DNA of 64,000 bases, taken from NCBI GenBank assembly GCA_047495785.1, contig JBLDXI010000024.1:4092001-4156000 (forward strand), written 5' to 3'. Positions 19,943 through 41,931 of this stretch are shown here, piece after piece (position 1 is the stretch's first letter; every line of letters starts with the position of its first letter). This DNA is from Lepidodermella squamata (taxonomy: Eukaryota; Animalia; Gastrotricha). Made by a program: the position numbers and the translations under genes. Below the pieces are notes generated by a model, which had not been told where the DNA came from, made no database searches, and worked only from the letters and a program-made list of their open reading frames with translations.

Positions 19943-21680
19943 TCATTTTTTGCGGACAATGAGCGCAAATTTACGCGTTCCGCATCTGAATCTGAAAATT
20001 TTGAAATTTTCAAAAAAAAAATTAATCAAAAATCAAGGACGCTTATACCTGATGTGGTCGCGAATGGTGTTGGGTGGCTTGTTAACTTCCGACAGTTGGC
20101 AGTCTTCGACTTCAAAATTTTTCCAATCGCTGATCACAATTACTGACCCTGGCAAAATAATTCATAAAATTTTTCATTAATTTAAAAAAAATATAAAAAA
20201 TAAAACAGTTTTTAATTAATTTCATGAATAATTTTAGGAATTTAAAAAATATTCAAATTAGTATTTGATCAATTTTTCTCACCTTTGCCATCAATATTTT
20301 CGGGTCGATAGGAACTGATTTCCATCAGCAATTCGCCGTATTCATTCGCCTGCCTGAGCCAATCCGGCGATCCGCAAATCTCAACCGCAAATTTCGCATC
20401 CTCAAACGATCGAACCCGCGGCAAAGTTCGAAATCTGTCCGGCTGAGCTCGCAACACGCAAATATTCAGCGTTGGGTACAATTCGTCATTCATTCGCAAA
20501 GCGTCTTGAAAATACGACTCAGCTTTGTGGCCATTTTTCTCCTTGTACGTCGCATATCCCAGCCCAACAACATCAACAACGACCAACTCAGGTATCAAGC
20601 CGTATTTCGCGCCGATATTAGACCTCAACGCGTTGTAGACGAACAAATCTTGATTCGTGAAATTTATCGGTTCCCCAGTTTTGTCCAGTCCATGAAAATC
20701 GGTTGAAAACGTCAAAATCGATCGATTTTCGAATTTTGGCGAGTTCAGCAAATCGCTGTAATTTTTCGCCAGAGCCTCAACATATTGGCAATATCCGATC
20801 GGGTCATTCATCCGAGGAATCGATTTACCAATCGATCTTGAAATCGAATAATGGAGCAGGACGCAATTCCCAGATTTTATCGATTCGATTTCGCGGAAAC
20901 ATTCGTTGAAAAATGCGGCGGCTTTCGATTTTAAATAACCGGGTTTCGTCGCGACTTTCCAGCTAGCATCGCCGATTCCTAGGCTCAAATCACCGCCTTC
21001 GTAACCGCAGTTTAAAAATATCAATATCGAAATTGGCCATTGATTTTCTGGGTGGAAAAATCGATCGCGAGTCAATTTCGCCCCCTCGCGAAGAATTAGC
21101 ATCGATTTCAAACTGGCCTCGATTGGACCCTCGAAAACAACATCCAAGTTAGGGAAGAAATTTTTCGTAAAATCGAACATTAATTCGCTCCGAAAAGAAT
21201 CCGTGAATAAATTCGACCAATTTTCGTCCTGAGAAAAATCGATTTTTTTCGCATCGATTTCCATCAAATTCGATTTCGGGTTATTTCCGATGATTTCTTG
21301 AAGAAATAACGATTCTTCGAGTGGATAGGCGAGTTTGTGACCCACGGTTTCGCCCATCGGCGCGTGGTCGAGAGTGGCGTCGACAAAGTATTCGAAATTC
21401 GGGCTGCATCCTTTTCCGGGCTTGTCGGCTTTGTTTGCCATATTATTATTGTAGAATGATTCATTCCAAATTTCATCCGTATTTTTGTTCAAAAATTCAA
21501 GAATTCGCCGCTTACTATCGTTTTGATTACCACTAGCATTGTGAATAACAAAAAAGGAAAATTACTAAAAATCGCGTTTCAATGAAAAAGATATTAAAAT
21601 TTATTGGCTAATTTTGAATTTTCGAAATGGAAATGAGCTAACGAAATGAACAGAAGAAACTTACTTTTTGGAGCTGTCAT
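19943..21680 (-). CDS. Tandem family copy 1: 2OG-Fe(II) oxygenase-like fold without metal ligands (start exon uncertain)
   Basis: Main exon about 20284-21535 with WPISILIFLNCGYEGGDL and FFNECFREIESIKSG. Short downstream exons near 20050-20147 and 19943-19991 are homologous to those of copies 3 and 4. Confidence 0.65.
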
Positions 21681-23180
21681 TTGCACGCAATTTCGAGCAT
21701 TTCAAATTATCCTGTAAAACATCGCAAAATCAAGAAAAAAATCGATAATTTGTTATCGAATCGGCCAACCTCGGCCGCGATGTGAGGTCGTGAGTGTCGC
21801 TTCATAATACGATATCAGCCAAATTTAGGTAAGAGAAAAACACCAAGAATACCAAGGTGGAAGTTCTCTAATTCAATAGCCGCGAATTTGAACTTTTAAT
21901 GACCACGTTTCTCTCATCAACGCACCGTGCCGCTCTGAGGTCGTTGCGCCCCGCGGTGTTCGCGCACTAATACGCAACTCGCTGTGGCACCTTAATTGCG
22001 AGGAAATGGCAGGTTATGGCGTGATTTTGATAACCCGCAATTATTAAGGCACATTGAGTCATCGCGACGGTGGGACCGATGCCTCTTAATTAACCTGCAT
22101 CCCGAGCAACAAACTCATTGAAATTCGATAATAGACATTGAGAAACAGAGATTTCAGGTAAAAAAATGAAAATTTGAATTTGTTTACGATCGCAAAACCT
22201 GAGCATAAATCTAGCACTCTTTCTTCCTTACCTTGGTTTCATTCGCACCAGGTGCGGAGATATTAGAAAAGTAAAAAATAAAATTTGAAAAATACTAAAA
22301 TGACCCAACTCGACATAGGAAACCGTCGTAGTGCGACATTTCAGCCAACGACAACTGAGCAAAAACTCAGCCAAAATTTAAATTTAAATTTTGAATATAT
22401 GAAAACGGCATTTCAGCCAAAACTCAGCCAAAATTAATTAATGTCATAAAAATGGGCAATTAATTGCGTAATATCAAATGGTTCGAGAGGGCGCCTATGG
22501 GAAAGATCGCTCAGCGGACTTGACCGAAAAATACTGGCAAAGTTAGAATACTTAATCACCGACCTCTGCCTCGTCCCCGGCCACGACCTCGTTGTGTCCT
22601 TGTCCTCGGCCTCGGTCTGCCTGAACCGCGCCATCCTCAACACCTCTGACATCCAACGTTGTTGGGTCTTTCAAGTGTTGCATTTGGCTGGGTCTGATCC
22701 AGGCACCTTTTTGCTGGCTTTCAAATGAATCTAACCTCATCGTGCCCCAAAATATAGAAGCCGCGCTATATTTAGGCAACAGTGGTCGCAAAATTTCGGA
22801 AATTTACATTTCTTGACATTTGCCGGAACGGTACATTTCAAAATTATGAATACAATTTTGAACAATAAAAGTTTTTTCGCAATTATTTTATTGCGGTATT
22901 TGTGATCTCTGATCATACGGATGAGTCATCAACATTGCACCAACGATTATACCATAATATGATACAAAAATATAAATAACCCATCTTGTCCAGCAATTTT
23001 CTCAAAAGACTACGCCGCCGTTTATTAATTTGGCCCATTCAAAGGTAACGCGATCAATAGCAAACACCAAAAAACGCACGCACTCACCGAATAACTGAAA
23101 GAATGTCCGACTTATTTAGTTTATCACTCACTCACCCTGCGTTCATTTGACCCCGCTTTTTTTATTACAAAAAACACGAC

Positions 23181-24026
23181 ATGAATTCCGCGAATTTGCT
23201 CCTGCTGCTGATATTATCCTTTCAACCACCCGTTTCCGGCCAGTTGTTCAATCTGCCCACCTCATGGTCCGCCTTTGCTAGCTGGTCTGTAAACACAGCC
23301 ACGGGCAACTCGCCAGCCGCCTCCGTGCCTAGTGTCAGCATCAACCTGCCCAGCGTCTCAGTCCCTGGCGTCGGCTCAATCAACATCCCAGGCGTGTCGA
23401 TACCCAGCGTATCCGTGCCGTCACTCAGCGGCTCGTGGAGTTGGATAAACGGCGCGTGGTCCTGGATTGCCTCATCATCATCGCCTAGCGTCTCAGCCGC
23501 CTCGTCCTGGCTATGGTACGGCTCCTCCTGGATCCAGGCCACGTGGTCAGGCGCGGCCTGGCAGGTGTGGATGGGCACCTCATGGGCGCAATGGGCCGGC
23601 ACCTCCTGGGCGCAATGGGTCAATAACTCTTGGGCGCAATGGACCGGAACCTCCTGGGCAATCTGGGTGGGGACGTCGTGGTCCTACTGGAACGGTTACG
23701 CCTATGTCACAGCCTCGACTACCCCCTCAACTACCTGGTCACCCAGTTCGATTGTTCTGAGGCCGAATCAGCCGAGCGTGTCCGGGGGTAACCCATCACC
23801 ATCGCCGTCGCCCTCGCCCTCGCCATCACCTTCGAACCCGTCTTCGTGGACCCCGGTTGTAGTTGGGACACCCTGGTCGTCCCCATCGCCCTCGCCGAGT
23901 TCTTCCTCGAATAACGGCGGCTCGTCATCAGGCTCGGGTGATTCATCGTCGAGGTCGAAATCAGCTGAATTAGCCGTTTGTAAATGGACTATTATAACTT
24001 TACTAGCTGGCTTTACGCTATGTTAA
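23181..24026 (+). CDS. Intronless secreted, probably GPI-anchored Trp/Ser/Pro-rich repeat protein (281 aa)
   Basis: Signal peptide; (S/P)VS repeats; 8-aa W-x-G-x-S-W repeats; (SP)n stalk; hydrophobic C-terminus; AATAAA about 20 bp after the stop. Confidence 0.8.
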   Translation: MNSANLLLLLILSFQPPVSGQLFNLPTSWSAFASWSVNTATGNSPAASVPSVSINLPSVSVPGVGSINIPGVSIPSVSVPSLSGSWSWINGAWSWIASSSSPSVSAASSWLWYGSSWIQATWSGAAWQVWMGTSWAQWAGTSWAQWVNNSWAQWTGTSWAIWVGTSWSYWNGYAYVTASTTPSTTWSPSSIVLRPNQPSVSGGNPSPSPSPSPSPSPSNPSSWTPVVVGTPWSSPSPSPSSSSNNGGSSSGSGDSSSRSKSAELAVCKWTIITLLAGFTLC

Positions 24027-25010
24027 TTTGTCATTTTTCAAGTTCGACTAATAAAATCGATAGGATTTCCGATTGAATTTTTTCATTAAATTTTCGAATT
24101 TTTGGTCTGCGCATCAAAATAGAGAAAAATGACATCTTGTCCTAGAATTTGCGCAACTATGTATTTTTTAATTTGGTAATTATTTGTAAGAAATTTAAAT
24201 AATTTTTTCAACTGAAACATACCGAGAGATAGGTCTTTCTTTTAACCGCGATTCAATCGAAGATTTAATAGAAAATTTACCGGAGAAAACCCGGAAACCC
24301 CCGATGGTAACTGGTTCCTGGTTCGGTATTTTTCGGAATGTTACCCTGAAGGACCAAATTTCTCCGGGCTCTTTACATCCCATGAACCATGAACGAGTGG
24401 CATTCTTGACATTCTTGACTTGATTACTATTCTCGTAATTTTTTGAATTTTTCTAAACATTTTCGGGCCATAAGATGACTTTGTCTCTCATTTTAAAGTT
24501 CCTGAACCCTTTTTCCGTATGTATTTTCTTAGCCTGCGTTGCATTCGACCTTAATTACAGCCCAGACTTAGATTTACAAAAATTTTTTATTTTAAATTAT
24601 GTACCCATTACCTTATTTGAACTGAAATAATTATGTCAAATGTATTTCTAGCTCGGCGTGATCAAGACGAAAATGATTTCTTATTTCGAATTTTATTAGG
24701 AAAAAAGCAAAAGATTGAAATAAAATTGAGTAGAAAGAGGCAGTTTAAAGGATAAATACCACATCAGATCCATGAGAGTTCGAAATTTCGATTCATCATC
24801 GAAACGATACTAGCATAGCTCCTTTCCTGAAAGCCAGCATGAATCTGAAATAACGTGAAATTCGTGAAAAGCGAGAAAATCAAATGAAAACTTTACTCGA
24901 TGTAGCCGGGTCGTTCTTTGGCTGTACGGGTATCCGTGATGAAGCAATCACGAATTTCAATATCGCGCCAATCGCTGACAACAACAGCCGGTCATCCTTG
25001 AAAAAAAAAA

Positions 25011-25664
25011 GTTACAGACGAAACTCAAACTTTGTACCCGACAAAAACTACAAAAATGCCATTTTTCAGATGACCAAGAAGATCGGTCAGGCCAACAGGG
25101 CAATCACGCAGCTCCTAAGACTGAGACCTTACTTATCGACACGCCAGCTCGAAAATGCTTACAAGACCTACGTTCTACCATACCTCGAATTCGCTATGGT
25201 ACCATATACATTCGCGGCGTCGGCTAGCACCTTGGAGAAACTCGATGCAGTTCAAAACAGATTTGTTAAGATGACGGAAGCCAAATTGACACCGCTGGGC
25301 CATCGCAGATTCGTCGGGGTCATGACGTATCTCTACAAAACTATGGTAGCAGGTCGGGGGACGAAACAAGTCCGCTCGAAATTTATAAAAATTCCGAAGC
25401 CGAATACAAGAACGAGGGCAGCGAGCGAGAAACACCACCATCAACTACAGCTCGCAAAATCGTCGAAGAACAGGGTCGACACGGCACCCTTTCGAAGGAT
25501 GCAAGAGATCGTCAATCAATGGAACGACCTACCACGCGATACCTTTCCTGACACCGTCAACATCACAATATTTAAAGAAAAGATGAACGTCCTAGGGCGT
25601 CGGCTATAAGCCTACTAATGATAACTGTGTGCGCCTGAATTTTTTCGTAAATAAAAAAAAAAAA
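25011..25664 (+). mobile_element. 5'-truncated non-LTR retrotransposon (CR1/L2-like ORF2 C-terminus)
   Basis: AYKTYVLPYLEFA, LEKLDAVQNRF, LGHRR...YLYK and VNQWNDLP are typical post-RT motifs. Short 3' UTR with AATAAA and poly(A); an A-tract is also present at the 5' junction. Confidence 0.85.
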
Positions 25665-27760
25665 GATAATTTTGTAACATATTAAAAAGCAGCATAACGG
25701 GGCCTAACTAGGGCCCAGCTACTTTTGATGCGATGCAAAGCTTCCGATGAACATTGCCAAAAATGTTCGCAGAATTTTTCCTCGTTGCACGTGACACCCT
25801 TGTAACTTTTAACCACAAGGCTGTTTTGAATGAAGCCAGATTTCAATGTTTTTGCCATCGTGCTCTGACTGTAGAAAAACGGTCTGAAACGAATTGATCC
25901 AAGAAATTCCGATGTTTCGCGAGACACAAGTCTCCGCAAATTGATAGCCTACCTCCTCAGCCAATCAGGCAGAGATTCAATTTTTTAAATAATATTATTT
26001 TCCTGTTTTAACTAAGTTTGTCAAGGTATCTCGCAAGAAGAGCTTTCGATCAAAACTTCATCTGGAGGAACACGCCCGTGGCAATCTTACTCCGAAGTAC
26101 CCAACTTTTTGCGAGAAGTCAGTGAGTTCATGAGGCAATTCGTGAACATTTTCGACACTCTCGAAGCAGAAATTGCTCGACGTAAGGCGGTCCTGCGGAT
26201 AACGCGATCGCCCGCTGTTGTGAACTTCAGCCCACGCGAAAAACCCATCGTTTCCGGTTAGAAACGGACAATTTTGAAGTAAGCATTGACAACCAGCCAT
26301 GTACGTTCGCGGCTTCCATGGTTACTCTCGAAAAACTGGACGCCATACAGGTTAGATTCTGCAAAATCACTTGAGCCACGCTGCAACGTCGTTTTGTAGG
26401 AGTGATGACCTACTTGTACAAAATCATCGTTGCTGGACGTGGAACAGCTCAGGTTCGATCGAAATTCAAGCGAATTTTCAAACGGCGCACTCCTGCGCGA
26501 GAATGCACTGCCAAGCACTATCATCTAATCAGCCTAGCGTAACCTTAGGTTTAGCTAGAAATGCAGGACCCAACCTCGTTTGACTCTGAGCCGATACCTA
26601 AGAAATCGGAATCGAAGGCGAAATCTAACAACTCGAAGAAAAAATCAACGTCGTCTAAACGGAATTGAAGCCGTTCCAAAGTTTGAAGCCTCGCATGCAA
26701 ATAAATCTGCGTCTCAGCCGAAGAGTAGAAGGCAGACAAAAAAACCAAAACGGCGGCAAGTGCCAAGCAAAGCCAAAAAATTACCGGTAAAGAAATCGCT
26801 ACTGAACAATCGCAACTCGTGAGTATTGTTTTTTCTGTCATAAATCCCTGCTTCTTCTCAGTGCACGGTTTGCTCACTTTGGCTGTGTGAAGACATTTGA
26901 AAAGGGGTAGGTACGTGTCACGTTCGCAAATACCCTTTCGAAATGTAACGATTAGCGTAGTTGAATGTTTATCTCTGAAAATTTTTGATTAAGCAAAATT
27001 CACCTGCTTTTGGCGATTTTTGAAAATTAGCGAATAATTTATCACAATCATTTGCGTGGAATGGTGTGTACGAACGATATTCCGCTACAAGTGGATCGAA
27101 ACCGAATTCCAAGCGCAATGTTGCCACGCCAAGCACATCCAGCAACCAAAAGTCGAACCCAGTGAAGCGAATGCAATTCGGCTTGGTCGAGGTCGAGGCT
27201 GACACGTCCAAGCAAAACGAGGCGGCGCCGATAAAACTACCCGGCCGGCCTCTACAAAACTTTGACGCAAAGTAATTGGCAGATCAGGGCTGCAAAAAGT
27301 GTAAAACCTTCCCATATCCTATAGATTTTTAACAAAAATCTTCCCCATCATAACAGAGCAATCGATTGATCATTTATCGATTATCGATAATCGATGTAAG
27401 CCACATACATGATTTTAATCATACAATGGATGGAAGATTCGAATTTAGCGCAAAATCCTGCGTTCAGTTTTTGAAAAAATGAAAAATACTCAATTCAATA
27501 ACCTCTATTGCACCAATTGACTTCCAGAAGTAATTACCGGTAATTGAGGGTAATTAAATTTTATTACTATTTTGTAAACTATTTTGTAAGTGGGGCAAAC
27601 AATATATCAAACTAAGCACTCGCCCAACCAATTCGCCCAACTTTAATTTAAAATTAAAATTAATGCTCAAAGCTCAAAGGCATGCACGCGTGCGCTCAAG
27701 CATCAGGTGTAACATGCTGCACGCACCTTCAGAAATTAGGGGGCCAAGATTTTATGTAAT

Positions 27761-27835
27761 TGGAGCGACCCAAGTTTAAAACTAGCTCTATGGAGCGACC
27801 CAAGTTTAAAACTAGCTCTATGGAGCGACCCAAGT
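27761..27835. repeat. Perfect 30-bp tandem repeat, 2.5 copies
   Basis: Unit TGGAGCGACCCAAGTTTAAAACTAGCTCTA. Confidence 0.95.
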
Positions 27836-28460
27836 CTTACATTTCTATCCACATTTTTATTATTTGAATCTAAATTTTACTTCAACAATGTTCTACTCAC
27901 TTTTTCCACTTTGACATGAAATATAAGCCGGGTATAAGCAACACGTGTAATAAAAAGAAAGCGGCGAAAAAGTCGTCATGTTGCGCAACTTGCGAAGATA
28001 CTAATTTGATGCTAGTCGATGCCACGCTACGATGCGAAGAGCCTCCAGTCGCTGCCGACGTGCGAGTTATTGTAACTCGCGATTGCCGTCTCGAAAACGC
28101 GGTCGGCCTGCGATGCGCCTCAAGGTCCCAGACCTTGTAAAAGCGAAATGTAATTTTATTACACCTACTTATTATATTGTTGGTATGATCCACCTTAATA
28201 CATCTAGCACCTCCGCCACGTAAAAAAGTGACCGCAAGCGAGGAAGTAGGGGTAAAGCGGAAACGCGGCAGGCCTGCTAAAGTGTACAGCACAACAGCAC
28301 CTAAGACGCGCGGTCAACAGGCGTTGAGTAAACAACCCGCTGAGAGCAAATCCACTCCCCTTGAGGCACCCTCGTCACCCTCGCCATCCTCAACACCTTC
28401 GCCACACCTCGTCTACTCTTCGCGTTCCGGCTTACCGCCACTCGTGCCCCCGGAAATAAT

Positions 28461-28592
28461 TACCGAAATACTAACCCGGGCTTATACACAAATGATACCT
28501 CGAAAAATTGGGAAAAGAGGCTTCTATTCAAGACTAGGCTTCTATTTGAGATATGCCAGGCTTCTAAACGAGTGGGGGCTTATATTTCGGTA
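28461..28592. mobile_element. Small MITE nested in the MULE remnant
   Basis: Ends TACCGAAATA and TATTTCGGTA; internal GGCTT(A/C)TA motif repeated five times. Confidence 0.4.
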
Positions 28593-29504
28593 ACTATCTC
28601 CCGCATCACCCCGGGTTAAGAAGCGAAAATCAAGCCTTAAAACCACATCAACGAAAGTGCGGCCGCGGGTTTTGAAATCTAGGAAAGGTGTGACCGCGGT
28701 GATTGTGCCGTCTTCTTACATCGCCTAATGTCCCAAACATAATTAGCTCCAACACCCTACATGATCACTATAAACAGGCTATCGAGGCAAATAAAATAAG
28801 AACCGATAACTTGGTCGAGTCTAGGCATCATCGCATCAATGACAAATTAACGGCGCCGCATCGGAAGTCTGACCTCACGATAAACGATAAACAAGGTTGC
28901 TTCGGTCGAAACCAGGCTAGAACAGCAAGCCGCCGATCAAACGCTTAGCCGTGCAAACCCAAAACTCGACAAGAAAAATGCCGCAATAACATTTGTTACA
29001 GCCCAATATTTGAGCTCAATTAAAATTGCTTTACAACAAAAATTAGCTGCACTTTTAATCATTCTTAGTCATCAGGTGAGTAAAATAAGAATGATATACA
29101 GTTGAATTCTTGGATAATATCGGCAGCCATCGTTGTGAACTGATTTAAATAAAAATTGTTGCCTAGAATCTGTAATATTCGGGCGCGCGTGCGTATATTT
29201 AAGCATTAATTTTAATTTTAAATAAAAGTTGGGCGAATTGGTTGAGCGAGTGCGCGGTTGGGCGAAAATGTTGGGCGAGTGGGAATTTGAGCGGATTAAG
29301 TTGGGCGAACGGGAATCACCCCAACTTCAGCCTAAGAAATAGGCAACCCAGGTTACAAATACCTTAAGCACTCTTCAGGAATAAACGTAACGATGGGAAA
29401 TATGCAGGATAAATTAAGAATTTGGATGATGAGAAATTTAGTAATGTAAACAAGTTGGAAACGCTTTGCTAGGAAATCGCTTGCAAAATGAGAGCAAATT
29501 TCAA

Positions 29505-31146
29505 TTAAAATAAATAATGGTAAATACCTGTCGATTCGTCTTCTTTATGTGGATAGTCGATTTCAGTCAAAATTTCGCCCTCAAATTTTCTATCGATCCA
29601 ATTCGATTTTTCAGCCCGGGCTTGTTCCTCCTCCGACCTTACCCGAGGCAAAACTCGAAATCTCGCCGGATCCTGACGGCGAATCGTTATTTTAACCGAA
29701 GTGTCTTTATCCGGGACAAAAATCGCGTCCAAAAAGCAGGACATTGCCGAATAGGGCGGGCTGGATTTCAGCTTCGCGAATCCAGTCACAAAAATCTCAG
29801 CCACGAAAACGTCGGCCTTCTTATTCCAGTTCTTATGAAAGTTTGACATCGAATGGCGTTGTACGCAAATAAATCCAAGCCAAGCAAATCAATCGGCTTT
29901 AAATTTTCAACAGGGTAGCTGTGATGAAATAAAACCAGCGAAGATTTATCAACATAACGCGGCGTTCTCAATAAATCCGAGAAAGTTTCATTCAAATTCG
30001 ACGCGATTGTGGCGTAGGTTTCCGAAAATTTCAAAAAAAATTCAGGAATTTCCGCGTTCTCACCGGCGACTGAGTAATGCAACGCGAAGCACGTTCTTTC
30101 AGTTATCGGCAGAGTTTCTATGAATAAGTCGTTGTAAAACGCAACAATATTCGACTTGAAATGGCCAGGTTTTGAATTTAATTCCAGTAAACGTGTCTAT
30201 CTCGCAGCGCAATTTCACCGCCTTTGTAGTTCGAATCGAGGAAAATGAGAATCGAAATTGGCCATTGATTTTTCGACTTTGCTTCGACCCTTGATATCAG
30301 GTCATCTCGAGTGAAACCTCTGCCTTTCGGTATTAAAATCAAATTTTCCAGGGTTAGTGTAGCCATGGATGATGGATTAGCAAGTTTATCGACCCCGTCA
30401 TTAATGAGATTTTTCAACAGCGAAAATACCAGTTCGCTATCTAGGGAATGGCTGAACAATTTCGGCCATAAATTATCCGTTGAGAAGTCGAGTTGACTCC
30501 GGCAGAATGTCAAAATTATTGCGCTTTTGGCGACTTGTTTGAGTATTGCACATTCATCGAGTGGATAAGCAATGAAATGCCCTTCAATTTTCCACCTGTG
30601 AAAAAACAATTAGGTAAATAAAATGAACCAGTTTCGGACAAATCAGGCGAAAAACGTTTTGAAATCTCTAAAATCTTAAATGACCCAGTTTCGTGTAGTA
30701 TTTTTCACTTTGATTTAATTAAAAAAATTGAAATTTGATTCAAAATTTAAAAAATGTCAGGGTAGCAACTTGAAATCAAATTAAAATTTTCTAATTTTTT
30801 AAAAGCAGATAAATTGTTCCGCTGGAATTTTCACCCACCTTGGCAAGTAGTCGAGAATTTTTTCGCTGAAAAATTGAACTGCAGGACTAAAATCGTCATC
30901 TTCCTCATCGCAGTAAGATCCGTCTTCGTTGAAGAAATTGTGAATCAACGCAGCCAACTCGCGATGCGTTCTCGCACTGAAAATTTAAACATAAAACATG
31001 AAATAACTATTTCAAAATCTGTTATACTCCAATTCTGATTCGGCGTCGCTAGATGAATCCTACCGAGGGCAAAACAGAAAGTTAGAGCAGATCATCACTC
31101 AATAAAAACTCACTGAGATCTGCCTCTTTCTTTTCTCACTTGCCAT
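29505..31146 (-). pseudogene. Tandem family copy 2, frameshifted
   Basis: Homologous to copies 1, 3 and 4. A frameshift near 30181 (TGG AAT TAA instead of W-K-x-x-S-K-P-G) gives an immediate stop, and a second frameshift lies near 29848. The 3' exons were not recognised. Confidence 0.75.
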
Positions 31147-31596
31147 TTTTCGAAATTAAGAACCCTAAAACGGCCAAGTACATCTGATTAGTTGTAAGCT
31201 CAACAGTTTTTCAAACAAAATTGGTCAAAATTAAGAATAGGCAATGGGAATCAGGAGAATTATTTGCTATTTTCTACCGTGTTCTGTGGGTAGAATTTTT
31301 GCGAAATTGCACTAAAGTAGCAGGATAGGGAAATTCACGAGAAACCGAGTACTGAATACTGAGAAATGAGGTGTAACTCTATGATGTGGGCCACATGTTC
31401 TGCTGTTTCATACGAGGTAACGGGAAGAGCAAACAAATTATCGGACCATTATTTCAAGTTTTTACTTCGAGATATGAGATAAAAGTCTTCATTATAAAAT
31501 ATTAGAAAAAAATGAATTATTAATTAGAAAAATGAGAAGAATGTTTGAGCACACAGTTAGCATTTCATAAAATTGAATCCAAGTTTTCACATCAGT

Positions 31597-33560
31597 TCAT
31601 CTGTATGATTTTCGAACCAGCAGAGCGGCTTTTCGGAAGCCAAGCATGAATCTGAGTCGAAAAACAGAAAAATAACGCATATTTTTGCAATTTTTGCGCA
31701 CTTTTACTCGATGAATCCCGGTTTTCCTTCGGCCGGTCGCGTGTCGCTTGCATAGCAGTTTTGAACAGTTAGATCTTGCCAGACACCGGAGACGACAGCC
31801 GGACCTTCCACGAAAAATCAAGGTCAAAAAATTATTCCGATTTTTTTCTGCGAAAAATTGATTAATCAAATTTTTACGAATCTCAAAAAATCATCATAAA
31901 CTACGCCTATTTTATTTGGAAAAATTTGCGCCTCTATTAATCGATGAAACCGAAACAAGAAATTCGAATTAAAATTTATTTAATCAAATTTCTCTAAAAA
32001 TTTACTTCCAAAATTAATAAAAATCGAGTTTCATGAAAATTTAGAAAAATATAAATTTCACAGTCGAAACCTATGAAATTCAATATTTTTGTGGAACTTC
32101 TGACCAGTCTGGCAAAATAGTACCTCGCGATAAGTGCTCTTTGAACGGGAATTCGAGCTCGACCAAAATCTCGCCATCATTTTGATAATTGGCCCAATTA
32201 GCATGCAATTTGTTCTCGTAAACTTGGGTTCCACTGCGAACACGCGGCAACTTTCGCATCCTCTCCAAATTATCCCGACGAATCGTAACCTTCATATTCA
32301 TCCCCTTTTTCGGCGCAAAAATCGCCTTGTGGAAAATGCCGAAAGGACTAGGCGGATCGCCCGCCAATTCAGCCCGCTCAAAGCCGGTGACAAACACATC
32401 GACAAGCGCAATTTCAGCCTTCAAATGCCGCTCGACGCCAAAATTCGACCGAATCGCGTTGTAGCTGAACAGGTGGTAGTTATGCACGTCGATCGGCTGC
32501 AAATTCATAACCGGATATTTTTCAAAAAACGTTTGCAACGCAACTTTGCAGTGGAAACGCGGCAGATCAAGCAATTCGGAAAATCGATTACACAGATTTT
32601 TCGCTATTCTGGCATAACCAAACGGTTTAGGCTTCTCTAACTTAGCTCCGATTTTGCCGTAGACTGAGTAGAGTAAGACGACGCAACTGCCTTCGGTAAC
32701 TGGTTCGATTTCTTTGAAACACTCGTCGAAAAATGAGAAAATTTTCGATTTCAGATGACATGGTTTTGAAGGGATTTTCCACGAAATCGGCCCGATTTCC
32801 AACGACACAGCCCCTCCCTCGTAGTTGGAATCGAGAAAAGCCAGAAAGGTGACTGGCCAGCGATTTGAATCACCATTGTCCGGAATTAGGTCATTTTTCG
32901 TCAATTTTTGACCCTTCGGAATTACGATCAACTCTTTTAGATTTGCTTGAACCGGCACAGGTCCTAAAACAAGATGTTTCTCCACCCCATATTCCTCTAG
33001 CAAGTTCCGCATCAGCGAATCGACAAGTTCCGATTGCTTCGCATCGCTTAACAATTTTTGCCACAGTTCATCCTCAGAAAAATCTAGCTGTTTTGCGTTG
33101 ACCCTCAATATTTGCTGAGTTTCGAAAAATGATTCAGCTATCGGATAGCTCAAATAGCGGCCGTCGATTTTGAGCCTGGGTAAGCAGTCTAAGTTTGTAT
33201 CGGCGAAATATTCAATTTCAGGGCCGTGGTCATCAATTCGCTCATCCTCGCCACAGTTTTCATCTTCGTAGTCCGGCTCCCGCGCGGCTTCTTCTTCCGA
33301 ATTCATGCACTCGCCTTCTTCTTCGAAAAAATAACCGAGAATTTCTCTTAGCCGCATTTCGTTCTCCTCGCTGATTAATTGCAAAATTCAGAATGAAATT
33401 AATGAGTTTATTTCACATTTCTTACTCATTTCTGGCCTTTTTCTTGGATTTTCCAGCCTGTAAAACCAAGCAAAAAAATATGAAAAATATTTTATCTAAA
33501 TTGACATACTGAAACGGTTTCATTGCAATTTTCACGCTTCTTCTTGTTATTGCTTGCCAT
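31597..33560 (-). CDS. Tandem family copy 3 (two short basic 5' exons, main exon about 33371-32124, then 31805-31709 and 31651-31597)
   Basis: Start MASNNKKKR; WPVTFLAFLDSNYEGGAV; FFDECFKEIEPVTEGSCVVLLY; last exon EFMLGFRKAALLVRKSYR. Confidence 0.8.
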
Positions 33561-34690
33561 TTTACTGCACTCTTCAAATTATAAATTTGATTCGAAAAAA
33601 TCCTACAGGAAGATTAAACAAAAATTAAAGGCGCGTAAATTGAATTGAATTAAATTAAAAATTAATTGTGGAAAATGGATGCCGCGCAAGGGCGAAACGG
33701 GGTAGAGAAAGCTAATCTTTTCATTTCACATTTCAAAGACGCAACAAACGTAATACGTATCACGAGGAGACTAGTCTGCTCTAGTCCGTCTTGCCTCGCC
33801 GAGTGACGGCAGTAATTCAAGTCCAGCCAAAACTCGCGGCCCTGCTCACGTTTATAAAACTACAAAGCAGTATCAAGGTGTCACCTGGGAAAAGGTCCGC
33901 CCTCAGGAGAAGGAAGATTTCCCTTCGTACCGAGAACGCGAAGGAGCGAGCTTCTTGGTGTTTGGGTTTCTCCGATGTCACTGAAACTTCGTATGACATG
34001 AACCTCTTCCTTCTGAAGCATCATTTGAATAACATTAAATGTGATTTGATAACTTGATCCTTATGTGATTACAGTATTTCATGCGATAGATTCTCGACTC
34101 ATTTTGGATAGATTTTCGCCTTTTGTATCTTCCAAATTTTTTCTTGCGAATATCGCACTTCAGTGCCTTACTTTGTCGTGCTTCGTGAATTGCCTTTCTG
34201 CCTGTTGCCAATGATAACATAGGTATGATATAAATAATGAAATGCACACCTGTATCCGAACATGACTGTTTCTGAGTTTGCCTCGATTTAAGACGGTGTT
34301 ATGTCTCTCGGGCGCGAGAAGAAATGCGAGAAAGCAAAAGAACGGTGCAGTTAGAACGGGTTGCCCGACAAAGTCACAACCAGTTGATTACCTGAATTTC
34401 GTCGCGAAGTCGTGTGGCCAAATGTTCCCCGAGGGCAAGAAAACGCTGGATAGCTTCAATAAACTGGTTACAAAGTCGGGCGGTGACGTTGGACGGGCAC
34501 TGGAAGACATGTTTCTCGGCCTTGGACACGTCACCGTCCCCTTTCCATCTTCGGACATGGCGCCCAAGGAGTGCGTAGCGGTCGTTGCATTCTCCGTTTC
34601 TATGGGTGACATTTTATGCTGGTCGCCTAGTCGCGGGAGGAACGGCTATGCGACTTACACTGCATATCCCGTACATTCGAGCTCCAAGAA

Positions 34691-35293
34691 ATGTGCGAAC
34701 CCCAACGATCTACTCGAGGCGATAACAGCTTTCGCTATACAAGAATCATTTCTATGCCCAATTTGATGCTGGAACCCAATATCAGTGACGCGTTCGCGAA
34801 AAATTCTAGAATCATGCTAGTCGAGGACATAGCGAAAGAAATTATTATGGCTTTCGAATCACCTAAAAATGACGTGATTTTTGGATATTTTATACTCGAC
34901 CTGCCTCTCCATGCCAGCGTTGAATTCCTTCGACGAATTATTCCCGAAAAGCGCGTCATCATCACCGACCTTCCGGGCTTCAAAACTAAAGCCGCATTTG
35001 TTTGTTGCGATTCACTGGCCGACCGCAATGTGGCCATTGCCTCTCTGTCATCTGAAGTTAAAGGATGTCGTATCATTCCGTATTGCGAAGATGCGGGTAT
35101 TTTTCGCGATTTCTCAGACGGCCTGAAAAATGGGCGTTATAAGCGTCTTGTTTACGGTGGAGCGGGTTCGAAGGATATCAGTGATGGCAGCTGCAATGAA
35201 ACCGACGATGAAGAAGATTATCGCCTAATTTTTCGGGTGCCTTTATTTTTCGCTTCTGTTCAACAACAATATAGGAATCGATTGATAATCTAG
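34691..35293 (+). CDS. ORF with a degenerate RRM-like domain; overlaps the upstream orphan ORF 34278-34766 in another frame
   Basis: YFILDLP (RNP2-like), SVEFLRRII, KTKAAFVCC (RNP1-like), DSLADRNVAIASL and EVKGCRI occur with RRM spacing. Confidence 0.4.
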   Translation: MCEPQRSTRGDNSFRYTRIISMPNLMLEPNISDAFAKNSRIMLVEDIAKEIIMAFESPKNDVIFGYFILDLPLHASVEFLRRIIPEKRVIITDLPGFKTKAAFVCCDSLADRNVAIASLSSEVKGCRIIPYCEDAGIFRDFSDGLKNGRYKRLVYGGAGSKDISDGSCNETDDEEDYRLIFRVPLFFASVQQQYRNRLII

Positions 35294-35792
35294 CCTCGTA
35301 CGCAGCGCCCTTACATGATGCTTTGACAGCTTATGTTATTTTCGCGTGCCTTCGAGGACAAATGGCCGTTGATTCGTTGAGCAGCAATTGGTTCCGAATC
35401 AATCTGCTCAATTATTTCAGCGTTCGTTTCGACCTAGCCACCTACGCCTACCTTCCTTTCTCACATTTATGGCAAGGCATTTGTACGTTGGAAGTACAGA
35501 AGAGCGACGTTACAATACACACGACTGCGTAGCAATGTTCCACTTTGCGACTGGGTTAACACTAACAAATCATGAATTCTCTGAATCTTTAAAAAATTGC
35601 GAAATTCGTGTTCCTCTTCCTGTTTTTTGTCGCTAAATAAATACGGCCGGCACTCAGTTGTGTACGGCTAACATTTTTCAATATATTATGCTCGCATTAA
35701 TAATGAATCCAATACGTGACAGTACATTTCCATTTGCGTCTCACTCGTTTTTTATCCGGCGTCGACCTGTATGCACAAGCTACGGCATCCAG

Positions 35793-35800
35793 TATAAAAG
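35793..35800 (+). promoter_or_regulatory. TATA box of the FMO gene
   Basis: TATAAAAG about 55 bp upstream of the ATG at 35852. Confidence 0.55.
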
Positions 35801-35851
35801 GAGACCCAGGCGATAAAAAGAAGCCGTTTTATCATCGCCAATTCTTTTAAA

Positions 35852-37159
35852 ATGGTCCGATTAGCTGTTGTAGGAGCAGGACCTTCAGGTCTAGTCACTG
35901 TCCACACGATCAAACGTCGATTGCCCGCAAACTACGAGGTGGTCGGCTTCGAACGCGGCAGTGAAATCGGCGGCGAGTGGCTATGGACCGACAAAGCTGG
36001 CGTCTACGAAGACGGCACGCCGAAAAGAAGTTCAATTTACAAAGGCCTGCGGCTGAACACGCCGAAGCCGCTGAACGAGATTCACATGCTGGACTACCCT
36101 GTCCCGGATGACATGCCTGATTTCCCATCAGCCGCGGACTTTCTCAAATTCCTGCAGGGGTTCGATCGAACTTTTAATATAGGTAGTCACTTTCGATTTC
36201 AAACAATGGTTACTAACATTCGGCGTGAATCGCCTGGTAGTACCAGGCTGGTACTGACTATCAAAGACCTGGCGACAATGAGTGCCACAGAAGAAACTTT
36301 CGACTACGTATTCCTCTGCGTTGGCCAGAACCCTCAGCCTTACATTGTGCCTGAGATGGATGTTTCTAAATTCTCTGGAACTGTCATGCATTACCACGAT
36401 CTCTACGACCCAGAAAAAATGACAGGGAAGCGGGTTCTTGTTGTAGGAACTTCTTTCGGCGGGTTGGACATGGTTTTAATGCTAAGAGATTTCGCCAAGA
36501 AAATAGTTGTGTCCTACCACTCCGGGATACCTTTCTGGCACAACGAAGCAGTTGAAACTGTGGCCGAGTTCCGCCAAAATCTTGTTAGAGCTGAGGGGAA
36601 TACGGCTTATTTCGAAGATGGAACTTCCAGTGAGGTTGATGTCATTATTTTTGCAACCGGCTATCGGCAGGTCCATCCTTTATCCCAAGACGTGGCTGTT
36701 AAAATCGACAACTCGCAGCTGGTCTACCCGTTCTATAAGCACCTCGTTCACCCCGACTGCCCTTCGATATTTTTCATGGGCAAGGTGTATGAGAGCATTT
36801 TTCATCTTTTGAGACCACAAGCTGAGTTCTGTTGTGCTGTAATTGAAGGGTCTTTCAAACTACCGTCAACGGAGGAGATGAAACAGGACATTGAAGAATC
36901 GAAGGCGAAATGGTGCCCTCAAATGGAGTTGATGTGGGATATTTCGGAGTTTTACCCGATTTTCTTACAGGAGATGGAAATCGGCAGGTTTTTGACTGAG
37001 AAGGCCAAATGCGAGCCGATTCCAGACTATGTGCCTCGGGTGCTATTTGCATCGCTGAAATCTATCAGGAATGACGTGCTGCGGTATCGGGAGTACAAGC
37101 TAGCTCCGGATTGGAAAACTGCGACCGAATCCACTTCAATCATGATCCCACCAAAGTGA
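35852..37159 (+). CDS. Intronless flavin-containing monooxygenase (FMO family), 435 aa
   Basis: FAD motif GAGPSG; FERGSEIGGEW; SSIYKGLRLNTPK; FMO fingerprint variant FSGTVMHYHDLY; DVIIFATGY; AATAAA downstream. Confidence 0.92.
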   Translation: MVRLAVVGAGPSGLVTVHTIKRRLPANYEVVGFERGSEIGGEWLWTDKAGVYEDGTPKRSSIYKGLRLNTPKPLNEIHMLDYPVPDDMPDFPSAADFLKFLQGFDRTFNIGSHFRFQTMVTNIRRESPGSTRLVLTIKDLATMSATEETFDYVFLCVGQNPQPYIVPEMDVSKFSGTVMHYHDLYDPEKMTGKRVLVVGTSFGGLDMVLMLRDFAKKIVVSYHSGIPFWHNEAVETVAEFRQNLVRAEGNTAYFEDGTSSEVDVIIFATGYRQVHPLSQDVAVKIDNSQLVYPFYKHLVHPDCPSIFFMGKVYESIFHLLRPQAEFCCAVIEGSFKLPSTEEMKQDIEESKAKWCPQMELMWDISEFYPIFLQEMEIGRFLTEKAKCEPIPDYVPRVLFASLKSIRNDVLRYREYKLAPDWKTATESTSIMIPPK

Positions 37160-37675
37160 AAGTATCAATCGTTCAACTACAATCAGAATTGTATTGGCGC
37201 TATTTCTACACGCTTTGTGATTTCTCAATTAATAAAAGTTGAATGATCAAATTCCTTGTCAATAAACGCCTCTGGCCTATAATCAATCCAGCATTTTTCT
37301 GAACATTCCCCGCGGAAACCAAATTACTGGGCCGAAAAATTACCTCGCTTTAAAAGCCACGAGTGCAGAGTCTGCAGACCTTCCCGGAAGCAAATTTGAA
37401 ATTTCCCGCTTTCTCTATTGGGAAGCTTCAAAATTTCCCGGAAATTACTGAAACCCCCAAAATTCCAGGCAACAAGATCCAGGTAGAATTATACACCCCT
37501 GATGAAAGCATTAATATTGAGAATTGGGAAGACGCCGCTGTATTAGCTCAGAATAGAATTGCCCTCAATTCAATGGTACCATTTGAGGATATTTCCAATG
37601 TTTTCATTCTTCAAAACTTTATTGGCAAGACAGCTTCAAACTTATTTACACTAAAACTTGTCATATTAATTCACC

Positions 37676-40600
37676 TCAAACTTTTTTTACGAGCAAGGCG
37701 GCTTTTCGAAAGCCCAGCGCGAATCTGAGGTGAAAATGAAGTACTATAAACGTCATACTTGTTTAGCCAAAAGGCAAATAATACTTACTCGATAAAACCC
37801 GGCTTTCCCTCGGCTGGTCGCGTGTCGCTAGCGTAGATGTTTTGAATTGTCAGACTTTGCCAGACACTGGCTACAACAGCCGAACCTAACAGTAATAAAG
37901 AAAATGATATCAATCTAATTTTTTCATATAATCGAAATGAATTAATAAAGAATGTCACTCTCAAACGAATTTAAGGAAGGCAACTTCGGTTTTGAGGATA
38001 CGATCCTTGTTAAAGTAAACGTCGGATCTCTGCGCACAGCTATTACTGACCATTTGGAGTGAGTCTTCCAAATAACTGCATCTTTCTATCGCTATTGATT
38101 ATTTTCAGGCGTGCTACCGACGACCGACGAAGGACTATCATACTGGAAAAATAATCGAAAATCGACCGAAAACAGGGCTATTTCAATACCATTTTATTCT
38201 CTCTTTTTTCTTCACGTGAAAGCAGCTTCAGACTTCAAGCACTGAGAATCTTCGTACCTATAAAGTACGTAAGTTGTTGCCGTGGCCAAACAAGACGACG
38301 ACGATTCAATTTTCTTTAGGTGGACATTGTCGACTATGGAAATCGAAATCCCGCAAAAACTCGAACGAATATTGAGAGTTCTGAGTTGGTCTAAACATGC
38401 TACCCCTCAACGAACAATCGCCATTGAAGTAACCTATTGGGAACCATAGATAAGAATCTTGCAGGTAATATCTTGCTGATAAGCTGCAGCTTGAAAGCTC
38501 TTGGTATCGCGCCAGTTCCGAGAGTTGAAAGAAGACGGGATAATTGGCGATGTTGTGACATCACTGGTAACCAAGCTGAAAACAGTGCTATTCTGCACAA
38601 CGGAGTGTGAAAGGGGATTTTCCTCCATGAATCTGATTTAGGACGAGAAGCGGTCTCTTTCTTAGCTAGAACAGTTGAAGGTAGGATACAACGAAAGCCT
38701 GATACCCTTCGCGTAATTTTAAACTACTGTTTTAGGACTCTCCAATGCCTTCTGTTCCATGCCGGTTTCATTATTGCACCTGCTAGCGATTTTGTTCTGG
38801 CCTATAAGGACGACATAATTGCTTTCGGCGCTGTCGAGAATGAGTCTACCGTCGTCATGACGATTTCTGTGAAAAACGAGATACATAAAATCGAGGGGAC
38901 AGTTGGGTTTCTCAGGGACGCGTTTCAAACTGATGGAGCTCGTTTCTGTCATGTAAGTCATAGGACTTATGTGTTATTGTAAATTTCGGTTATTTTTCAA
39001 ATATGATTCTACAGGTGAATATTGACCCAACCCGCAGTCGATTAGCCGTCGAGTCATGGATGACTCGATTCCTGCGATGCGGCAACAGAGAAAGCGGGTT
39101 GCTCCAGCTCATCTCTGATGTCGAGGAAGTAGGCATTTCACGTGCCGTCGCTGAGGTCTCGGAAAGCCGTGGCCTTCATCTAACAGCAGCTTTGATATTC
39201 TCTCGGCTAGACTGTCCCTTTGATGCGCTTCGCAATTTCTACCGGTGTCGCGATGTTATTGATCTTTCCAGCCTCGTAATAACTGTTATTTTCTAACTTA
39301 ATTTTTCTAATGGGAATATTATAGATTCCGGAGTATATTGGATGTGAAGCTGTGAGTGAACTCGCCAGAGTCGACCCGGAATTCAAGCAAATCGCAAACC
39401 CGTTACGGAGAACCTTCACCAGTTGTCTCGACAGATCTCACGAAATGGCTTCTAAACACGACCACGACTACATCGTCCGGATTAACGACGAAGAAATTAA
39501 TTCGGAAATAAAGCACGCCCGAAACAAAACGAAAGATGTGACGAAGACAGGCGGCGAGACACTGGACGAAACAACTTTGTTGCAATACGACACCATCCTA
39601 ACGACAACTGGTGCTGACATGACAAGAACAGAGAAATGCGAGAACGCTGCCAACAACGCAACCTTGCCCGACAAAATTGACGCCAACGTCGCCAACGCCT
39701 CAAATACCGTCGTTATCGAACGCTCGCAAAGGTTCCTACAAAAAAACCGGTCCCAAATACCTGGAATTGATCTTTCCTCATCTCTTCATCTAGGTCAAGG
39801 AGGATTGTCCGAGAAGCGCAGCTGGCACTACACTCAGCGCGAACTCTTCATTCATTACCTCAACTTATCTCACGGCGACTTTGCGAGAGATCTACACTTC
39901 CGTTTCCTCGCTTTTGACCTACTGCGCTTAGAGCAAGAACGTCACGGCTTCTCTGGCATACAGCTGATCGAGTACCTGTGAGACGTCAGCCGCCAGTTCC
40001 GCACAGAAACAGTTAATGACGCAGACGACAATCCGCCCAAATAGGGGTGAAATCGTGGTGAAATGAATCGATGAAAAGCAGCCCAACAAGTCAGTACAAT
40101 TCGATTTCACCCCTTTGTTCGGCAAAACTTTCCGCTCCTGAGTCCGGCGTTTGCACTGCAGAACAACGCCGGACTGGACGAGCTCAAATTTCGTGGGCTC
40201 ACAAGTCTCTAGCTCAACCGTCGTGCTTATTCGCTCAACAGACAAATTGACAAATTTGGCTGACATGTTTTTGGGCGGAATAGTCGCGACGCAAAAGTCG
40301 CGACCGGAATTGTCGCCACGTCAAAATATGATTTAAAAATATGCAATTTACAATTTCTAACGCCGTAGTGCATTAACCTTATTACTTAACACTATCGATG
40401 AATCTGACTTGCGAAAATAAGTTTTTTTTCTTTTTTTTCAGCCTTTAAGCAAATTTACCCTACATCTAATAATAAAAAAACTGCGAGAAAATTTACCGTT
40501 CGATAGATGCTCTTTGAAGGGAAATTCGAGTTCAACCAAAATTTCGCCTTGATTTTCGAAATTGACCCAGTTCGCTTCTCCTTTCCTAGCTTGCGACTCC

Positions 40601-41931
40601 GTGCGAACCCGCGGTAGCTTCCGCATCCTGCCCAAACTATCGCGGCGAATCGTGATCTTCATATTCGTATCATCATCCGGTAGAAAAATCGCCCGATGAA
40701 AAACACTGAAAGGACTTATCGAAGTTGTTCCATCAAGCGACTCCACAAAACCCGTGACGAACACATCGACGAGCTCGATTTCAGCCTTCAAATGACGCTC
40801 TACGCCGAAATTCGACCGAATCGCATTAAAACTGAAAATGTCGAAATTTTGCACGTCGATCGGCTGCAAATTCATAACCGGGTAAATTCTGAAAAACATC
40901 TGCAAAGCTGATTTGTAGTGATAGCGAGACAATTGAAGCAATTCCGAGAATCGATTAGTCACATTTTTTGCTATTCTCGCATAACCCAACGGATTAGGCG
41001 AATGCAACTCAGTGCCGATTTTTCCATAGACCGAGTAATGTAGGACAATGCATGTGCCTTCGGTAACTGGTTCGATTTCTTTGAAACAATCGTCGAAAAA
41101 CGAGAAAACTTTTGATTTCAAATGACCAGGTTTTGAGGGGATTTTCCACGAAATCGGCCCGATTTCCAACGAAACAGCCCCTCCCTCGTAGTTAGAATCG
41201 AGGAAAGCCAGAAAGGTGACTGGCCAGCGATTTGAATCACCATTGTCCGGAATTAGGTCATTTTTCGTGATTTTCTGATCTTTCGGAATTACAATCAGTT
41301 CTTTTAGATAAGCTTGAATAGGGACAGATCCTTCAACGAGATATTGTCTTACTCCTGATTCATCTAGCAAGTTCCGCATCAGCGAATCGATAAGTTCAGA
41401 TTGCCTCGAATCACTGAATAATGTCGGCCATAATTCATCATCAGAAAAATCAAGCTGTCTCGCGCCGATTTTCAACAGTTGCTGATTTTGCTGAACTTCG
41501 AAAAATGTTTCAGCTATCGGATAGCTAAGATGACGGCCGTTGATTTTGAGCCTGGGTAAGTAGTCCACGTCTGTGTCGGCGAAATATTCGATTCCAGGAT
41601 GGTGGTCATCTATTCGCTCATCATCGTCACAGTTTTCGATGTCGTAATCCTGCTCTCGCGCGGCTCGTTCTTCCGAAGTTTCACATTCGCCTTCTTCTTC
41701 GAAAAACAGGTCGAGAATCTCTCTCAATCGCCGCTCCTCCGTCTCTCTGAAATGTTAGATATATTCAACTTGAATAAATGAAAACACTTGATTTTATTAC
41801 TCGTCCACTTTCTTCGATTTTCCGCGCTGAAATCGACAGTTGAAAATTTTTTAAATTAACGAGGGTGAAATAACGCATACAGTAGCCGGTTTTCCGGATG
41901 AAATTCCACGCTTCTTCGTTTTACTAGCCAT
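37676..41931 (-). CDS. Tandem family copy 4, with a 2.6-kb TE-expanded intron (37886-40496)
   Basis: Start MASKTKKR; main exon closely similar to copy 3; distal exons 37885-37789 and about 37724-37676 (EFALGFRKAALLVKKV) match the last exons of copy 3. Confidence 0.8.
37930..40400 (+). mobile_element. Degenerate Helitron-like fragment (DUF6570 / N-terminal Rep region) in an intron of family copy 4
   Basis: Frameshifted motifs FSNGNII, LTKWLL..HDHDY, IFPHLF..GQGG and HYLNLSHGDFARDLHFRFLAFD. Boundaries are approximate. Confidence 0.6.

Follow-up and report, generated by a model that had tools for sequence, protein, structure and literature searches.

Inactive proteins built on the 2-oxoglutarate (2OG)-Fe(II) oxygenase fold are well known in the JmjC branch, where JARID2 and S. 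pombe Epe1 act on chromatin and have demonstrated nuclear roles, but examples from the prolyl-hydroxylase-like branch are poorly documented. We describe here a probable case of the latter kind in the gastrotrich Lepidodermella squamata: four minus-strand paralogues between positions 19,943 and 41,931 of a 64,000-nt window of contig JBLDXI010000024.1 (the window being the whole stretch of DNA analysed). These paralogues, called copies 1 to 4 and collectively the window clade, occupy 19.9-21.6, 29.5-31.1, 32.1-33.6 and 40.4-41.9 kb; copies 1, 3 and 4 are intact and copy 2 is broken. We put at roughly 0.8 the probability that these genes form a divergent branch, devoid of catalysis, within a resident PF13640-bearing prolyl-hydroxylase-like family. 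The identity assigned to them in this explanation is very probable; the further proposition, that they are nuclear non-catalytic binders, is tentative and has rather less than an even chance of being right. As a case of enzyme turned pseudoenzyme the locus is clean, but not without precedent.

Conventional searches do not recognise these proteins; here, as for every other search and structure prediction, the query was the large exon of each gene. None of the copies matched Pfam even at E <= 10, leaving the PF13640 gathering score unreached, and neither PDB sequences nor a word-indexed protein search returned a match. When a profile of copies 1, 3 and 4 was scored against 1.84 billion cluster representatives with a threshold of E <= 1e-3, only 10 proteins were recovered (best 1.5e-7), seven of which carry PF13640 (2OG-FeII_Oxy_3) above its curated cut-off; the two best, P0001 and P0002, cover query positions 44-333, well past the oxygenase core. 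Starting from P0002, a word search then provided 24 relatives, some of which come from Boletus coccyginus, Gonium pectorale and a Pirellulaceae metagenome-assembled genome (MAG). Alignment of the three intact copies to 23 relatives with hhalign gave a probability of 98.8% (E 6.9e-17) over 263 columns spanning the N-terminal flank, the core and the C-terminal flank. With a 33-row alignment, AlphaFold2 modelled copy 3 at a mean predicted local distance difference test score (pLDDT) of 73.5 and a predicted template modelling score of 0.74, with residues 60-250 at about 85-97; given the three paralogues alone as the alignment, it reached a pLDDT of 39. The top matches listed by Foldseek against the PDB are 2OG oxygenases (the PKHD-type 3dkq, PiuC, PHD2, PBCV-1 vCPH, a bacterial P4H and Tpa1) at probabilities of 0.98-1.0, VIA-align superposes 140-166 residues from model residues 55-245 at Z 8.0-9.6, and PF13640 clusters make up 28 of the 30 nearest ESM Atlas neighbours. 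Because the library search, hhalign, the structural comparisons of the model and the ESM Atlas all agree, the prolyl-hydroxylase-like 2OG-Fe(II) oxygenase fold, a double-stranded beta-helix (DSBH), is confirmed for these copies at the level of profiles and predicted structure. This is the P4Hc / 2OG-FeII_Oxy_3 fold that a first-pass annotation of the same DNA had proposed from a core motif, which is indeed present in the copies. The predicted architecture, as in the parent family, starts with an N-terminal helix, which an acidic linker connects to the DSBH core, and is completed by a C-terminal domain (residues 246-434), whose ESM Atlas neighbours are all unnamed and fungal.

The relatives conserve their catalytic motifs, HRD(T), DCxHEV and GxR, almost without variation, and it is at these positions that the window clade departs from them. 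The first His of HxD is replaced by Asn in copies 3 and 4 and by Asp in copy 1; an Asp aligned to that of HxD occurs only in copies 3 and 4, past a 3-residue insert, copy 1 having Phe or a gap. The distal His position holds Lys in copies 3 and 4, Arg in copy 1 and Ile in copy 2, and the 2OG-binding Arg position holds Cys in all four, within an ungapped block that reads CF(K/R)EIE...G.C in copies 1, 3 and 4 and LFIET...RTC in copy 2. Neither the HxD/E...H facial triad nor the 2OG-binding Arg (or Lys) is present in the window clade, and the cofactor-site substitutions listed in the first-pass annotation are borne out. No His is invariant among copies 1, 3 and 4 over the whole protein, so that on sequence grounds a conserved His-based substitute site is excluded; together with the DSBH model, this leaves that annotation's pseudoenzyme proposal standing on the two points, a different fold or a substitute triad, on which it might have failed. 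The relatives show conservation of 85% or more at 32 positions; the three intact copies all retain only seven of these, every one of the seven within the DSBH core. In the same three copies the APFGxGxxT..D..VR..WQI block that precedes the core is deleted and the C-terminal LKGxD is replaced.

What replaces the ligands is itself conserved: Lys or Arg at the distal His position and Cys at the Arg position, together with C222, E225 and E227 (copy 3 numbering), and a set of clade-specific invariant lysines in a loop between DSBH strands, SWK...KPG.LKSK. Since the Lys/Arg and Cys replacements are common to copy 1 and to copies 3 and 4, a single ancient loss is suggested, after which the new residues came under constraint; from these alignments, the ligands would have been lost once, before copy 1 split from copies 3 and 4. 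The proteins would then have lost the binding of both Fe(II) and 2OG and would function without catalysis. These same conserved residues could also be taken to mean that the copies are still enzymes with a non-canonical chemistry in the DSBH pocket, for instance with the invariant cysteines C222 and C234 and acidic residues forming a new metal or cofactor site. The pocket-lining replacements are indeed conserved rather than random, and purifying selection peaks in the core, as detailed below. Against such an enzyme stands the lack of any invariant His in the protein, and C222 is conserved in the canonical family too, so that it is not a new ligand. We know of no 2OG oxygenase that functions without both histidines; AspH, an unusual member, has a two-histidine iron site. 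We therefore regard retained catalysis of this kind as very improbable.

Between copies 3 and 4 the non-synonymous (dN) and synonymous (dS) divergences are 0.183 and 0.668, a dN/dS of 0.27 (bootstrap 95% interval 0.20-0.37), and in the 60 codons of the core they fall to 0.022 and 0.23, a dN/dS of about 0.1. The low core dS (copy 3 32680-32860 against copy 4 41020-41200, minus strand) compares with 0.44-1.0 in most other stretches, and gene conversion or codon-level constraint could explain it. Synonymous sites between copy 1 and copies 3 and 4 are saturated, so no dN/dS is given for that pair; their frames are nevertheless open and their core is conserved. Because dN/dS is low, and because frames and core have outlasted synonymous saturation, the intact copies are, judging from these substitution patterns, genes maintained under purifying selection, which supports the pseudoenzyme status proposed for them. 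The alternative, that all four copies are functionless, decaying relics in which the frames of copies 1, 3 and 4 stay open by chance, can point to the broken copy 2, to the further ligand-less copies of the parent family in this genome, and to the fact that the copies are known from DNA alone. It has to contend with three frames of 407-434 codons that persist despite that saturation, with an upper bootstrap bound of 0.37, and with the 34% protein identity that copy 1 shares with copies 3 and 4, concentrated in the core; we consider it extremely improbable.

The GC content is about 42%, and the genes contain short GT-AG introns. Exon joins were checked for frame continuity in scripts. The gene models, ordered from copy 4 to copy 1, are as follows.

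41881..41931, minus strand: copy 4 micro-exon 1 (51 nt), starting MASKTKKR, with ATG, GTATGC donor and in-frame join
41801..41826, minus strand: copy 4 micro-exon 2 (26 nt), RGKSKKVD, with AG acceptor and GTAATA donor, joining at 41746 in frame
40438..41746, minus strand: copy 4 large exon and open frame, encoding the acidic N-region, DSBH core and C-terminal domain
40496, minus strand: copy 4 candidate GT donor
33510..33560, minus strand: copy 3 micro-exon 1 (51 nt), starting MASNNKKKR, with GTATGT donor and in-frame join
33426..33457, minus strand: copy 3 micro-exon 2 (32 nt), AGKSKKKARN, with AG acceptor and GTAAGA donor, joining at 33370
32080..33370, minus strand: copy 3 large exon and open frame, 434 aa, the protein that was modelled
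29505..31146, minus strand: copy 2 as a whole
30839..31146, minus strand: copy 2 5' exons, namely micro-exon 1 at 31114-31146 (starting MASEKRKR), micro-exon 2 at 31028-31059 (acidic) and a third from 30976
30597..30838, minus strand: copy 2 insertion or additional intron (about 240 bp), as read from the sequence
29505..30596, minus strand: copy 2 body in three reading frames, probably a pseudogene, with Ile at the distal His position
20269..21561, minus strand: copy 1 large open frame, with its first in-frame ATG at 21441 and a GT donor at 20282
20049-20148 and 19943-19991, minus strand: two putative 3' exons of copy 1 ending in a basic tail, with GT/AG borders, frame-consistent and stop-free

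Copies 3 and 4 are 72-74% identical, copy 1 is 34-36% identical to either, and the pieces of copy 2 are 41-46% identical to copy 3. A six-frame search of the whole 121.2-Mb, 151-contig assembly found no further copy of the window clade. The micro-exons of copies 2 to 4 join in frame across GT...AG borders and encode MAS, then basic clusters, then an acidic stretch, in keeping with the KRKR, KKKR and KTKKR micro-exons described in the first-pass annotation. Nine of the first 27 residues of copy 3, and likewise of copy 4, are Lys or Arg, in two clusters, and copy 2 has KRKR; copies 2-4 thus carry a classical nuclear localisation pattern (a K-K/R-x-K/R cluster, or basic residues in a bipartite arrangement, close to a terminus), as a pattern only. 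At the other end, all four copies have a homologously placed GT donor where the large exon ends, and the three-exon 3' model of copy 1, read from the DNA, ends exactly at 19943. The first-pass annotation had copies 1, 3 and 4 share their 3' exon layout; no 3' exon could be fixed for copy 4, and with canonical splice sites no model of a 5' exon could be built for copy 1.

Copy 2 is frameshifted near 30180, adjoining an in-frame TAA, and again near 29850, such that three frames abut and leave no space for introns. The published Lepidodermella squamata assembly was built from HiFi reads (122 Mb, 157 contigs; PMC11660948), and if it is the one analysed here, indel errors at these breaks are unlikely. 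Given that proviso, the three abutting frames and the TAA at the first junction, copy 2 is most likely a pseudogene, and its broken state supports the birth-and-death evolution that had been proposed for the cluster. The insert of about 240 bp, present in copy 2 only, falls within a conserved LPR|LKI.G segment and is bordered by near-identical strings of 12-15 nt, which may mark a duplicated target site or an intron gained recently.

The description of the cluster as a four-copy tandem family holds insofar as four same-strand paralogues lie where they were placed; one of them is not intact, and since an FMO-like gene and further open reading frames (ORFs) are interspersed among the copies, the array is a loose one and not strictly tandem. 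The FMO-like gene (35852-37159, plus strand), between copies 3 and 4, is an intronless ORF of 435 aa with a Pfam E of 1e-43. At 23181-24026 (plus strand), in the region's GC peak (0.48), there is an ORF of 281 aa that is rich in Ser, Trp and Pro, hydrophobic at its start and furnished with repeats of a GTSWAQW-like unit, and immediately upstream of copy 4 is a 642-aa open frame (42078-44006, minus strand); neither has a Pfam match.

The cluster is not isolated. A profile of the relatives found 24 matches in the genome (contigs C33, C7, C6, C46, C55, C3, C34 and C17) at E-values down to 1.7e-106, among which are canonical, apparently active paralogues at no fewer than 7 loci (at least L007-L012 and L014; contigs C33, C7, C6, C46 and C55), with intact HRDT, CxHEV and GYR motifs and several arranged in tandem pairs. 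These canonical loci have an intron near position 185 of the family hidden Markov model (HMM), where the window copies are continuous; canonical paralogues and window copies have in common an N-terminal LR..L...F helix, and copy 1 is the copy nearest to the canonical family (E 7.6e-15 to the family HMM). A second ligand-less set comprises six loci (L017-L022), four clustered on C3 (C3 2.716-2.791 Mb, C55 788.6 kb, C34 317.9 kb), in which HxD, the distal His and/or the Arg have been lost variously; by sequence comparison, its origin is independent of the window clade. The window cluster is therefore one very divergent branch of a larger, resident and expanded family, a point not made in the first-pass annotation. 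The proposal there of a lineage-specific family needs qualification, the copies being one branch of a resident family with intact members and a second dead branch.

Several further observations concern the parent family itself. Upstream exons of some canonical loci are basic (AKK repeats), SUMO-interaction-like (IVIPDDD) or SAP-like; at E <= 1, Pfam SAP was found neither in the upstream exons of two of these loci (L010, L011) nor in the N-termini of copies 3 and 4, and a Pfam search of the longer relatives for accessory domains yielded none except one sub-threshold Macro match in P0010. Relatives of the parent family also occur on two IMG/VR contigs of 44 and 34 kb (L024 and L025; UViG_3300009870_001193 and UViG_3300015615_000499), 30-34% identical to P0002. 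Two non-gastrotrich metagenome relatives, P0025 and P0007, deviate at HxD (e.g. Asn for His in P0025), so that site loss may recur in the parent family outside this genome. In the sources searched, the parent family has no sequence-detectable solved structure and no named function.

Maximum-likelihood trees were built from exon pieces only, over 102 columns in the domain's first half. In them the window copies group together with support 100/99, and the stem of this clade measures 2.9-3.4 changes per column. The clade attaches on the side of the gastrotrich-type sequences, and a branch supported at 90-92 / 94-96 splits it from the rows with fungal, algal and bacterial names. Of the six other dead copies, five make up a clade of their own (97/84) next to three canonical loci (L007, L008 and L012); the sixth (L019) is in the same group, its position not fixed. 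The phylogeny that had been called for to settle a bacterial, fungal or viral origin thus places the window clade on the gastrotrich-type side, but does not fix its exact attachment. Such an origin, by horizontal transfer of the cluster from a fungus, bacterium or virus instead of descent from the animal's own oxygenase family, would accord with ESM Atlas neighbours that are mostly fungal clusters, with the occurrence of the parent family in a basidiomycete, a green alga, a planctomycete MAG and the two IMG/VR contigs, with the lack in the window copies of the intron common to resident paralogues, and with the looseness of the tree placement. The copies, however, contain micro-exons of spliceosomal type, conserve a 3' donor, share the LR..L...F helix and domain order with the resident paralogues, fall on the gastrotrich-type side of the branch just described, and have no close relative among the 1.84 billion cluster representatives or in metagenome contigs. 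Transfer is in our judgement improbable; because the clade attaches with gastrotrich-type sequences, we consider it likelier on balance that the window clade arose by duplication in the animal lineage, its rapid divergence following the predicted loss of catalysis.

If the window clade is such a dead branch, its members would most likely work by binding, through the remodelled pocket and the lysine-rich SWK...KPG.LKSK loop. Their basic N-terminal micro-exons encode predicted import signals that would probably direct them to the nucleus, and there, by analogy, they might bind, compete for or regulate the target of the catalytic paralogues. Coexistence with catalytic paralogues of the same architecture, and the analogy with inactive JmjC proteins, make this the most economical guess. 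A more specific version, in which the proteins are metal-free nuclear readers or antagonists whose remodelled pocket recognises the substrate or its hydroxylated product, so as to form a writer/reader or writer/inhibitor pair with the enzymes, is unlikely; if true, an enzyme-pseudoenzyme pairing would have arisen repeatedly in one animal lineage.

These conclusions must be tempered by several considerations that weigh against them. The case is known from a genome sequence and a predicted structure alone, and its micro-exon models come from DNA only. Ligand loss rests on alignments that are robust and ungapped at the distal His and the Arg and gapped at HxD, and copies 3 and 4 retain the Asp aligned to that of HxD. 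In the tree the point of attachment of the window clade is not fixed, its stem is long and the nearest row, P0009, joins it only at 89/82, such that long-branch artefacts may affect its placement. Competition with the catalytic paralogues is an analogy, and loss of the APFGxG...VR and LKGxD blocks argues against simple substrate competition.

The reading of these genes as a dead branch of a resident oxygenase family has consequences beyond the locus. One genome would contain a natural series consisting of intact enzymes and two independently dead branches, one of them too diverged for standard domain searches. The locus would accordingly serve as a test case both for the repurposing of a DSBH pocket after ligand loss and for the reach of annotation pipelines, and it points to a widespread parent oxygenase family with possible nuclear features.

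Among known systems, the window clade most closely resembles the unnamed PF13640 subfamily represented by the canonical loci L007-L012, P0001, P0002, Boletus coccyginus HD554DRAFT_2016574 and Gonium pectorale GPECTOR_78g69, with which it is alike over the 263 aligned columns, in domain order and in the N-terminal helix. That subfamily keeps HRD(T), CxHEV and GxR, whereas the window clade replaces both histidines and the Arg and has the aligned Asp only in copies 3 and 4; the subfamily also has APFGxGxxT..D..VR and LKGxD and, in its gastrotrich members, the mid-domain intron, all three of which the window clade is without. The second ligand-less set derives from the same parent family and has also lost its ligands, but its replacements are heterogeneous and most of its members keep the mid-domain intron. 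Solved P4H-like structures (the PKHD-type 3dkq, PiuC 9qn4, PHD2/EGLN1, PBCV-1 vCPH 5c5t and Pseudomonas P4H 4j25) are alike in fold over residues 55-245, with VIA Z of 8.8-9.6 over 149-163 residues, at 10-16% identity; unlike them, the window clade has no metal or 2OG ligands and carries an extra C-terminal domain of about 190 residues without named relatives. The likeness to JARID2 and Epe1 is one of concept: a ligand-less DSBH kept by selection in a nuclear protein that binds rather than catalyses, a role that for the window clade is inferred only. Those two proteins belong to the JmjC branch, not to the P4H/PHD-like one, and have no sequence relationship to the window clade.

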